Assembly (NCBI RefSeq): GCF_006345805.1
Contig: NC_043021.1
Span: forward strand, 15,748,001-15,812,000
Source of the DNA: Octopus sinensis
Taxonomy: Eukaryota
Reading direction: 5' to 3'
Length of the DNA stretch: 64,000 bases
Position 1 is the first letter of the stretch. Each line of letters begins with the position of its first letter. Shown in pieces: positions 14,161 through 17,200 of the stretch. A model generated the notes under the pieces. It was given only the letters and a program-made list of their open reading frames with translations. It had not been told where the DNA came from and did not search any database. Made by a program: the position numbers and the translations under genes.

Positions 14161-14271
14161 TTACTTCCGATTAAATACTTTGGTAATCATTCTCACGGGT
14201 GAGTCGAACATAATGGTTGTGATGAATGACACGCCGTACGTTATTACTAAATGGCCGATAAAGGTGTACAT
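14161..14271 (-). CDS. nrf-6-like: nrf-6-like terminal coding exon ([36 protein letters not shown])
   Basis: CCCACAG acceptor, phase 0, TAA at 14161-14163; matches the family's last TM helix and its F-[ED]-x-P motif. Confidence 0.9.
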   Translation of the reverse strand: MYTFIGHLVITYGVSFITTIMFDSPVRMITKVFNRK

Positions 14272-17200
14272 CTGTGGGAAGAGATAAAGAATAAAAGAAT
14301 TAGAGAATAAAGGAATGAGTAAAAAAAAATAGAGTATTTCAGGGAATAATGGTGAAGATAGATTACACAGTGTATGTTAGTATTATATGGTTAATAATAG
14401 GTGTATATGTGTGAGGAAAATTAATAGAAGATTCTATTAATAATTAATAGAAGATTTAGAGAATAAAGGAATGAATAAAAGAATAGAGGATTGAAAGAAT
14501 AATGGTGAACAACAGCATATGTTATATAATATGGTTAATAAAAGGTGTATATATGTGAGAAAAAATATAAAGAATAGGAGAATTAGAGAATAAAAGAATG
14601 AATAAAAGAATAGAGGATTTAAGGAATAATGGTGAAGATAGATGATACAGTGTATGCTAGTATTATATGGTTAATAATAGGTGTATATGTGTGAGGAAAA
14701 TAATGATTAATAGAAGATTTAGAGAATAAAGGAATGAATAAAAGAACAGAGGATTTAAGGAATAATGGTGAAGTTGAACAACAGCATGTGTTATATTATA
14801 TGGTTAATAAAAGGTGTATATATGTGAGAAAAATATAAAGAATAAGGGAATTAGAGAATAAAGGAATGAATAAAAGAATAGAGGATTGAAGGAATAATAT
14901 GATGAATGATATTGCATTTTTTAGTTCTGTATATCTAATAAAGGTGTACATCTAAAAATGGAATAATTAGAGAATAAAGGAATGAGTTATAGAATACAGG
15001 AATAAAGGAATGATGGTTGTGATGAACGACACAACCTATGTTAATACCATGTGGCCAATAAGTGAAGGTGCATGGTTTAGTGATTAGTATGTTGTACTTG
15101 TGATTGTTAGATTAAGGTTTCAATTCCCAGACTGGGAAGTGCATTATTTTTCGAGTACCATCCGGAGTATTCGAACAGTTCCAAGCAATGCTGCCCCTAT
15201 TTGTTCCATGTACTTCTCAAGATTTTTACTCACTGTTCCCAGGGCTCCAACAATTATCAGTGCTACTACCACCTTTTTCATCAAACACAACTGATTAACC
15301 TCCCAAGCTAACCTGTCATACCTATCGACTTTTCTTTCTTCCTTTTCACTTACCTTGTTGTCAGATGAGCATCCTATATCTATGATCCAGCATCATTTCC
15401 TTTCTTTCTCAATTAACACTATGTCTAGTTTCCTATTCTCTATCTCATAGTCACACTATATCACAAAATCCCATAGGATCTTTGCATTATCATTTTCGAT
15501 TATTATTATTATTATTATTATTATTATTATTATTATTATTATTATTATTATTATTATTATTATTATCATCATCATCATCATCATTATTAGGGCAGCAAGC
15601 TGGCACAGTTGTTAGCTCATTGGGCTAAATGCTTAGTTGGCATTTCATTCAACTTTTTTCATTCTGAGTTCAAATCCTGCCAAGGTTAGTTTTGCCTTTC
15701 TTCTTTCTGATCTCATTGAAATAAGTACAGCTGCGCATTGAGGTTGATGTAACCAACAAACACCTCCCTCAAAGTTTCAGGCCTTGTACCTACAGTAAAA
15801 AGGATTATCATAACTATAATCCTTTCTACTAAAGGCACAAGGTCTGAAATTAAGGGGGAAGGGGATGGTCAATTACATCGACCACAGTGTTTCACTGGTA
15901 CTTAATTTATTGACCCTGAAAGGATGAAAGGCAAAGTTGACTTGAGCAGTATTAGAACTCAGAACATGCAGAGCAACGAAATGCCACTAAGCATTTTGTC
16001 TGGCATGCTAAGGATTGTGCCAGGTTACCACCTTTATAGTTATAATTATTATTATTATTATTATTTATTATTATTATTATTATTATTATTATTATTTATT
16101 ATTATTATTATATCATCATCATCATCATTATTAGGGCAGCAAGCTGGCACAGTTGTTAGCTCATTGGGCTAAATGCTTAGTTGGCATTTCATTCAACTTT
16201 TTTCATGCTGAGTTCAAATCCTGCCAAGGTTAGTTTTGCCTTTCTTCTTTCTGATCTCATTGAAATAAGTACCAGCTGCGCATTGAGGTTGATGTAACCA
16301 ACAAACACCTCCCTCAAAGTTTCAGGCCTTGTACCTACAGTAAAAAGGATTATCATAACTATAATCCTTTCTACTAAAGGCACAAGGTCTGAAATTAAGG
16401 GGGAAGGGGATGGTCAATTACATCGACCACAGTGTTTCACTGGTACTTAATTTATTGACCCTGAAAGGATGAAAGGCAAAGTTGACTTGAGCAGTATTAG
16501 AACTCAGAACATGCAGAGCAACGAAATGCCACTAAGCATTTTGTCTGGCATGCTAAGGATTGTGCCAGGTTACCACCTTTATAGTTATAATTATTATTAT
16601 TATTATTATTATTATCATTATTATTTTTAAGGACTGCATTTGGCTGGATCAACTCAATGCTTGACAAAAAAAAAACAGTATTTAATTACATCTCTTTACA
16701 TTTTGAGTTTGGACCTTCCTTTCAGCCCCCCCCCCCCCCGACACCCCTGTCCCTGGGTTAAAATTTGTCTTTCACCCTATTGGTAATCACTCGAGCACTG
16801 GCGGGAGGTGGGGAAGGAGGTGATGTAGGGCTTTGTGCTAATGTGAGAAGTCATTATCTCAAGAAATCATTATCTTAAGACACTTCACTTAACTAATCAG
16901 TCACTGATCTTCCACCAAAGTTTAAAGTATGTCCCACATTACAGCAACCTTCACATACCCTGAGACAATACCGCTGCCATTTACGCTGCTACCTCCACCA
17001 CCACCACCACCACCACCATCTCTGCTACTGCTACTGATGCTGCTATACACACAAATATTCCCAACACATCCCGAAAATGGGTCGTCAGCTACTGATTGAC
17101 AAAGTTTCAATCACCAACACAACTAACAACCTTTCGTTCACTGACATTATGTGTCTTTTCTATGTTTCTGCTTTTATCACTACTTCGACATCTTCTGACC

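Follow-up and report, generated by a model that had tools for sequence, protein, structure and literature searches.

A mirage-type minisatellite, probably neutral, at the last intron–exon boundary of an NRF-6-like acyltransferase gene in Octopus sinensis

Introduction

The mirage minisatellites of amphioxus Adh3 are said to have been described by Canestro et al. in 2002, in Nucleic Acids Res 30:2871. As defined in a later study (PMC3087553), mirages are minisatellite-like duplications of intron–exon boundaries, described in amphioxus Adh3 and then in amphioxus globin genes. The globin genes concerned are BflGb6 and BflGb9 (Ebner et al. 2010, PMC3087553). In BflGb6, a unit of 150–160 bp combines the 3' end of an intron with the 5' part of the next exon and is present in three to six copies, depending on haplotype; the AG is kept in many, not all, copies, and reverse transcription PCR (RT-PCR) shows normal splicing (PMC3087553). 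The central units are homogenized while the boundary units are not, and the discussion there allows that mirages may be general among cephalochordates (PMC3087553). A related case is the 37-bp variable number tandem repeat (VNTR) in intron 7 of human F7, the first unit of which spans the boundary between exon 7 and intervening sequence 7 (IVS7) (PMC1557585).

Here we describe an array of this kind in a 64,000-nucleotide stretch of Octopus sinensis DNA (RefSeq assembly GCF_006345805.1, contig NC_043021.1, positions 15,748,001 to 15,812,000 of the forward strand; hereafter the window, in whose coordinates positions are given). It lies on the minus strand, immediately in front of the terminal coding exon of a multi-exon gene that by homology is an NRF-6/O-acyltransferase-like membrane acyltransferase (Acyl_transf_3, PF01757). 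To judge from its sequence, the array fits the structural definition of a mirage. It is most probably a neutral relic that holds one cryptic acceptor, the authentic splice site apparently still being the one used.

Like the amphioxus mirages, the octopus array has a boundary-spanning unit, retains the AG in part of its copies, has changed in copy number and has edge units that stand apart from the centre. It differs in its mollusc host and in affecting a terminal, not an internal, exon. Its units are shorter (~130–144 bp, against 150–160 bp in BflGb6) and more diverged (69–93% identity, against 81–100% in amphioxus), they form an A/B higher-order structure, and the 5' edge is truncated by mobile elements, unlike in amphioxus. 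With a difference of one unit between two species, the array is old and slow rather than hypervariable. The F7 repeat is similar in that a splice signal is multiplied inside an intron and the machinery normally picks one authentic copy, but there it is the 5' splice site (donor) in 37-bp units and here the 3' splice site (acceptor) in ~130-bp units. Tandem exon duplication likewise copies splice signals together with coding sequence, and can give rise to mutually exclusive or alternative exons; the octopus units, in contrast, contain only part of an exon and no donor, and cannot act as substitute exons. A limited literature search returned no report of mirages in molluscs.

Results

The array consists of copies of an intron–exon boundary

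Between 15063 and 14272 on the minus strand lie six tandem copies of a ~130-bp unit, one truncated (U0) and five complete (U1 to U5), followed by the authentic exon (table 1). The unit comprises a head, equivalent to nt 1–63 of the terminal coding exon, and a pyrimidine-rich tail of ~70 nt that provides a polypyrimidine tract and a branch-point-like motif, TCTCTAAT. This module of TCTCTAAT or TCTCTAAA plus pyrimidine tract is kept in every unit. The six consecutive units are arranged head-to-tail and measure 112–144 bp, a unit size typical of minisatellites. Tandem Repeats Finder (TRF) reported a period of 136 (3.4 copies, 83% matches, score 615) and a higher-order period of 263 at 14438–14948 (1.9 copies, 85%, score 749).

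The original prediction, made from the sequence alone, had counted seven tandem units of exon head plus tract. The array stands; the count becomes five complete units, one truncated unit and the authentic exon. Seven similar segments are present in 15073–14162 (minus), starting at 15073 (apparent), 14951, 14821, 14688, 14552, 14408 and 14271, and the two outermost are not full units. The segment at 14271 is a head only (its similarity to the array ends inside the exon at CCATTAT/G, the slash here and below marking a boundary) and continues into unrelated sequence up to the TAA at 14164–14162. At the other edge, the apparent first ~10 nt of U0 (ATGCACCTTC, 15073–15064; ATGCACC) are the head of a plus-strand short interspersed nuclear element (SINE) and not derived from the exon. 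Since the apparent start belongs to the SINE, U0 is a 5'-truncated copy without an acceptor of its own.

The same prediction had named the lack of significant homology between units and exon as the finding that would overturn it. In shuffle tests (2000 shuffles), similarity was significant for every unit head. The exon head (14271–14209) shared 41/52 identities with U0 (z=16.7, 0/2000 shuffles); U1, U3 and U5 also gave 0/2000 each, while U2 and U4 gave 7/2000 and 15/2000, respectively. U0 is the copy closest to the exon (24% gap-free distance), and direct reading of the sequence bore out the claim that the unit near 15010–15060 can still be read as exon peptide.

An AG in acceptor context is kept in one copy of the six; four copies have CACAT or CACAC instead, and one lacks the upstream tract. 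The predicted alternation of A- and B-type units without AG was found as described, with CACAT/CACAC where the authentic site has CACAG. Also as predicted, the unit at 14951 (U1) has an intact ttccatttttag/ATGTACACCTTT boundary, 680 nt upstream of 14271 and in phase 0, matching the phase 0 donor at 18465, and opens a 51-aa open reading frame (ORF) whose stop codon (14798–14796) falls inside U2. The polypyrimidine tract and tAG of the U0 tail form the acceptor of U1. In the same way, the authentic acceptor takes its branch point (CTAAT at 14303), its polypyrimidine tract and its cAG from the U5 tail. The tail of U4 contains an internal 23-nt duplication.

Table 1. Positions in the window of the array, the exons that flank it and the adjoining mobile elements.
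Feature	Positions	Strand	Description
Penultimate coding exon	18465..18607	-	donor GTG/gtaagt after 18465, phase 0; identical in O. vulgaris P0001 and P0009
5'-truncated retrotransposon remnant	15147..15498	-	C-terminal module of a reverse-transcriptase ORF; within the last intron, a short way 5' of the array
tRNA-derived SINE head (GGTGCATGGTTTAGTGATTAG…TTCAATTCCCAGAC)	15064..15145 (start about 15064/15067)	+	antisense to the gene; abuts and truncates the first unit
U0	14952..15063	-	5'-truncated exon head plus polypyrimidine tract, without own acceptor; head still reads as exon-like peptide
U1	14822..14951	-	sole copy behind an intact acceptor, ttccatttttAG/ATGTACACC; AG at 14953-14952
U2	14689..14821	-	A-type; acceptor lost (CACAT/ATATACACC); 100% identical to O. 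vulgaris vU2
U3	14553..14688	-	B-type; acceptor lost (CACAC/); O. vulgaris has two units here
U4	14409..14552	-	A-type; acceptor lost (CACAT/); 99.3% identical to O. vulgaris vU5
U5	14272..14408	-	B-type; acceptor in front lost (CACAC/); 100% identical to O. vulgaris vU6
Authentic terminal coding exon	14162..14271	-	stop 14164-14162; only 14271-14209 in the repeat unit

The exon is ancestral and the array is derived from it

The composite of the exons in the window matched an O. vulgaris 'Acyltransferase 3 domain-containing protein' (P0001) with E=7e-151. It also matched NRF-6/O-acyltransferase-like proteins of Clytia, Glandiceps and teleosts (OACYL), all of which carry PF01757, and the O. vulgaris ortholog P0009 is annotated with the same domain. 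A Pfam scan limited to the last 208 aa of the window protein gave no match. The last three junctions are consistent in phase (exon ending at 20513, phase 1; exon 18607–18465, phase 0; start at 14271, phase 0). The authentic exon follows cccacag/ and opens with ATG TAC ACC. Its peptide is identical to the C-terminal end of P0009, and its 110 nt show 0 substitutions between the window and O. vulgaris.

The terminal exon peptide aligned to the C-termini of hemichordate, fish (FYLFIGHTVLTLVIGYVLTLLIEKPYLVLKRK) and cnidarian homologs (Glandiceps, Chanos and Clytia; 0/1000 shuffles each). The part of the exon that lies within the repeat encodes the conserved YxFIGxxVxTYGVSFxxxL common to all three groups. 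Because the peptide matches the conserved C-terminus of the family, the exon, including its 63 repeat nucleotides, is ancestral coding sequence. No further copies of the unit were found elsewhere in the 64-kb window. With the exon ancestral, the unit heads homologous to it and the unit otherwise absent from the window, the array is a local amplification of the boundary and not a satellite that recruited an exon. The comparisons thus indicate that the direction is from exon to array and the origin local, in agreement with the exon-to-satellite amplification originally proposed.

The array is shared with O. vulgaris and predates the species split

The homologous O. vulgaris locus (L001, OX597838.1) was located through P0009, a cluster mate of P0001. 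The window is collinear with it, with 2.7% substitution divergence in aligned sequence. A comparison of copy number across species, which the original prediction had called for, revealed the same array with one unit more. In L001, U0 starts at 37893, U1 at 38015 (with the same tttttag/ATGTACACC), the AG-less units at 38145, 38278, 38402, 38537 and 38681, and the exon at 38818. Orthologous units are 98.4–100% identical, the lower value being that of U0; U1 differs by one substitution. Units within one genome are 62–88% identical. In the extra O. vulgaris unit, an A-like head is joined to a B-like tail, a recombinant make-up that identifies it, as far as sequence can tell, as a footprint of unequal exchange.

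BLAST aligned the array one unit out of register, so that its 4.56% divergence is an artefact; the unit-by-unit alignment used instead gave 4 substitutions in about 666 nt. The array was not unusually conserved, as 28% of equal-sized windows of the locus were at least as conserved.

Distances between units, calculated without gaps, were 0.07 for U2–U4 and 0.15 for U3–U5, 0.14–0.21 between A and B types, 0.16–0.27 between U1 and the central units and 0.26–0.31 between U0 and any unit. The exon was at 0.24 from U0 and at 0.29–0.31 from the other units. Since the distances between units (0.07–0.31) exceed the distance between genomes (0.027), the array predates the species split. On this scale the youngest duplication would be ~2.6 times older than the split, and the first some ten times older. 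Neighbour-joining placed the exon and U0 together, against U1–U5, which indicates that the edges are the oldest copies and that the centre expanded later.

U1 is at most a minor cryptic acceptor

U1 has the only upstream AG in an acceptor-like context (80% pyrimidines, tAG/A, compared with 85%, cAG/A, at the authentic site). It is in phase 0 because it was copied from a real boundary and the donor at 18465 is in phase 0. Were the acceptor at 14951 functional, perhaps in a tissue-specific manner, the last 36 residues would be replaced by a hydrophobic tail of 51 aa, and the last transmembrane helix would be changed or abolished. The acceptor is intact, in phase and upstream of the authentic site, with a good polypyrimidine tract, and the 51-codon ORF is open in both genomes. 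A stop codon in the last exon is not expected to trigger nonsense-mediated decay, which also speaks for a functional site. However, the tail is unlike the C-termini of the family, with no similarity past its first five residues (MYTFI), and with it the protein would lose the conserved last helix and C-terminal motif. Its hydrophobicity is expected from the composition of the tract, which is 46% T and would give the same in any frame. Between species the tail is conserved to the same degree as the whole array and the surrounding intron, which is hence uninformative. Furthermore, the U1 AG has a single CTAAT upstream, at a distance of only ~15 nt, compared with ~27 nt at the authentic site, and this short spacing may weaken the acceptor.

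For the O. vulgaris annotation, alternative forms were derived with PASA from Iso-Seq and RNA-seq (PMC10700109). Both isoforms annotated at the locus use the authentic acceptor and neither uses the equivalent of U1. P0009 joins 34129 to 38818 in L001, which is the authentic junction, while P0001 uses a donor 4 nt further (GTAA/GTAA) with the same acceptor and reads the last exon out of frame. We also considered U1 as a cassette exon, which was ruled out: the interval from 14949 to the stop of the U1 ORF contains no GT, which leaves an alternative terminal exon, never a coding cassette, as the only possible role of U1.

A functional acceptor at 14951 is thus unlikely. Decidedly doubtful, too, is a regulated alternative terminal splice site that would swap the last helix and motif for a repeat-encoded hydrophobic tail. 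If it were true, a boundary minisatellite would here be giving rise to a new end of a protein, and the choice of site might be tuned by the pyrimidine modules that lack an AG. An alternative C-terminus appears unlikely as a major product, and U1 would be at most a minor cryptic acceptor.

Other readings of the array

The six modules, four of them AG-less, might instead form a splicing-regulatory platform, acting as decoys or as sites bound by pyrimidine-tract proteins (U2AF, PTB-like), so that removal of the last intron would be slowed or tuned. Every unit has kept its branch-point and pyrimidine-tract module, and the array has lasted many times longer than the two species have been apart. However, conservation does not exceed the background, the units are 7–31% diverged with indels in their tracts, and a slowly mutating neutral minisatellite would persist anyway. 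The original prediction had offered a battery of decoy 3' splice sites as one possibility, and this part did not hold: an acceptor-context AG is present in only one of the six copies, the remaining AGs of the array sit in poor contexts, and AG is not depleted overall (7 observed versus 8.2 expected). We regard a platform of this kind as very unlikely.

Some retroelements carry tandem repeats in their tails, and the array adjoins a SINE head and the 3' remnant of a retrotransposon, as would fit the reverse direction, with a satellite that already existed, or the tail of the neighbouring mobile element, as the source of the terminal exon. This is already contradicted by the family-conserved motif encoded in the repeat part of the exon, by the other SINE copies in the window, which have no such array, and by the confinement of the unit to this one site in the window; we consider it extremely improbable. 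Tandem arrays are prone to mis-assembly, and one mirage in the amphioxus draft genome was mis-assembled (PMC3087553), but an artificially expanded or mis-assembled repeat is hardly credible here, given that an independent chromosome-level assembly of another genome has the same unit order at 98–100% identity and that units 7–31% diverged are easy to assemble unambiguously.

Mobile elements and other repeats around the array

The SINE that truncates U0 recurs at least five times elsewhere in the window, at 44669 (+), 18407 (-), 60147, 34941 and 18099, and all these homologous copies open with GGTGCAT. The module in the retrotransposon remnant had 4,983 hits, and in these relatives it always lies at the extreme C-terminus of ~1,100-aa proteins with Pfam RVT_1; P0010 and P0011 are relatives of the remnant ORF. 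A Pfam scan of the ORF itself gave nothing useful. ARAGORN detected no tRNA in 14000–19000, and an Rfam scan of 13800–19000 returned only sub-threshold microRNA-like matches on hairpin repeats, none of them in the array.

The same intron contains a tandem duplication of a ~545-bp segment at 15648–16735 (15400–15720 versus 16042–16264, 97.8%). The segment holds SINE-like sequence, (ATT)n/(TTA)n microsatellites and a hairpin with weak, sub-threshold microRNA-like Rfam matches at 15773–15851 and 16318–16396. Further retrotransposon fragments, with reverse-transcriptase-like ORFs, lie in introns of the gene, at 21164–22265 (+) and 24702–23215 (-).

An array near the exon at 37.4 kb was considered as a second boundary-derived array and rejected, as it is a minisatellite of an 8/16-nt motif that starts ~30 nt inside the intron. 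This 1.47-kb minisatellite (35912–37386) has a CTGGCTAT-type motif and a 238-bp higher-order period. It begins past the donor of the ~37.59–37.42 kb exon, and stop-free frames continue into it from that exon.

Further features of the host gene

An NRF-like exon at ~47946–47700 (minus) shares the strand of the acyltransferase exons and lies upstream of them. The O. vulgaris annotation has the NRF part (PF20146; L001 1–8573) as an upstream gene separate from the PF01757 part. Because the Clytia and fish homologs have both domains in one protein, the separate annotation may represent a split gene model.

An exon-like ORF with good splice sites at ~28194–28033 (minus) matches a conserved segment of the family (Clytia RLTPSYMF…C.THWWSNLLYINN). 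P0001 and P0009 skip it, passing from …YLTRFLR straight to LPSVGLLVV…, and the conserved WYLANDMQF segment expected after it was not found. The cause is either incomplete models or partial degeneration of the gene.

The donor of the penultimate exon is a tandem one, GTG/GTAA/GTAAAA, at 18465–18457 (minus) in the window and 34129–34137 in L001, with the same sequence in both. The +4 donor used by P0001 frameshifts the terminal exon and removes the conserved C-terminus. Downstream of the gene, a (TA)n microsatellite of ~455 imperfect repeats occupies 12934–13813, ~350 nt past the stop codon, with (CA)n/(TG)n and (ACAT)n runs before it. The 860 nt that follow the stop codon contain neither AATAAA nor ATTAAA.

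Discussion

We propose that the array was seeded by a tandem duplication across the boundary between the last intron and the last exon of the NRF-6-like gene, probably through replication slippage or unequal crossing-over. The duplicated segment of ~130 bp would have included both the splice signals (branch point, polypyrimidine tract and AG) and the opening 63 nt of the exon. The 3'-most copy, alone contiguous with the rest of the exon, would have stayed the functional acceptor and exon under purifying selection, while the upstream copies turned intronic and decayed. U0, the outermost, would have gained a stop and later been truncated by insertion of the SINE or the retrotransposon. One lineage of units would have lost its AG and split into types A and B, and the AB pair would then have been re-duplicated by unequal exchange, yielding the central units. 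U1 would retain its intact in-frame acceptor by chance, and slow gain and loss of units would continue.

Several observations weigh against this reading. After a simple tandem duplication, a polypyrimidine segment should precede U0, and there is none; a displaced leading tract or more units were looked for upstream of the mobile elements, and none were found. Presumably, the leading tract was lost or displaced when the SINE or retroelement inserted. The U1 acceptor is strong by sequence and is transcribed before the authentic site. Finally, the array divergence of 0.6% between species fits neutrality without proving it. We nevertheless infer that the array is neutral.

Minisatellites that span a boundary amount to natural experiments on how splice sites are chosen. 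In this array the spliceosome would meet, in order, one intact duplicated acceptor, four AG-less modules of branch point and pyrimidine tract, and the authentic acceptor. Such an array can mislead gene predictors and readers into calling an alternative C-terminus. Beyond its interest for splice choice, the structure is ordinary and probably neutral. This old cephalopod example, shared between species, suggests that the mirage process is general in animals with repeat-rich introns, and it shows that such arrays can persist for long without homogenization.

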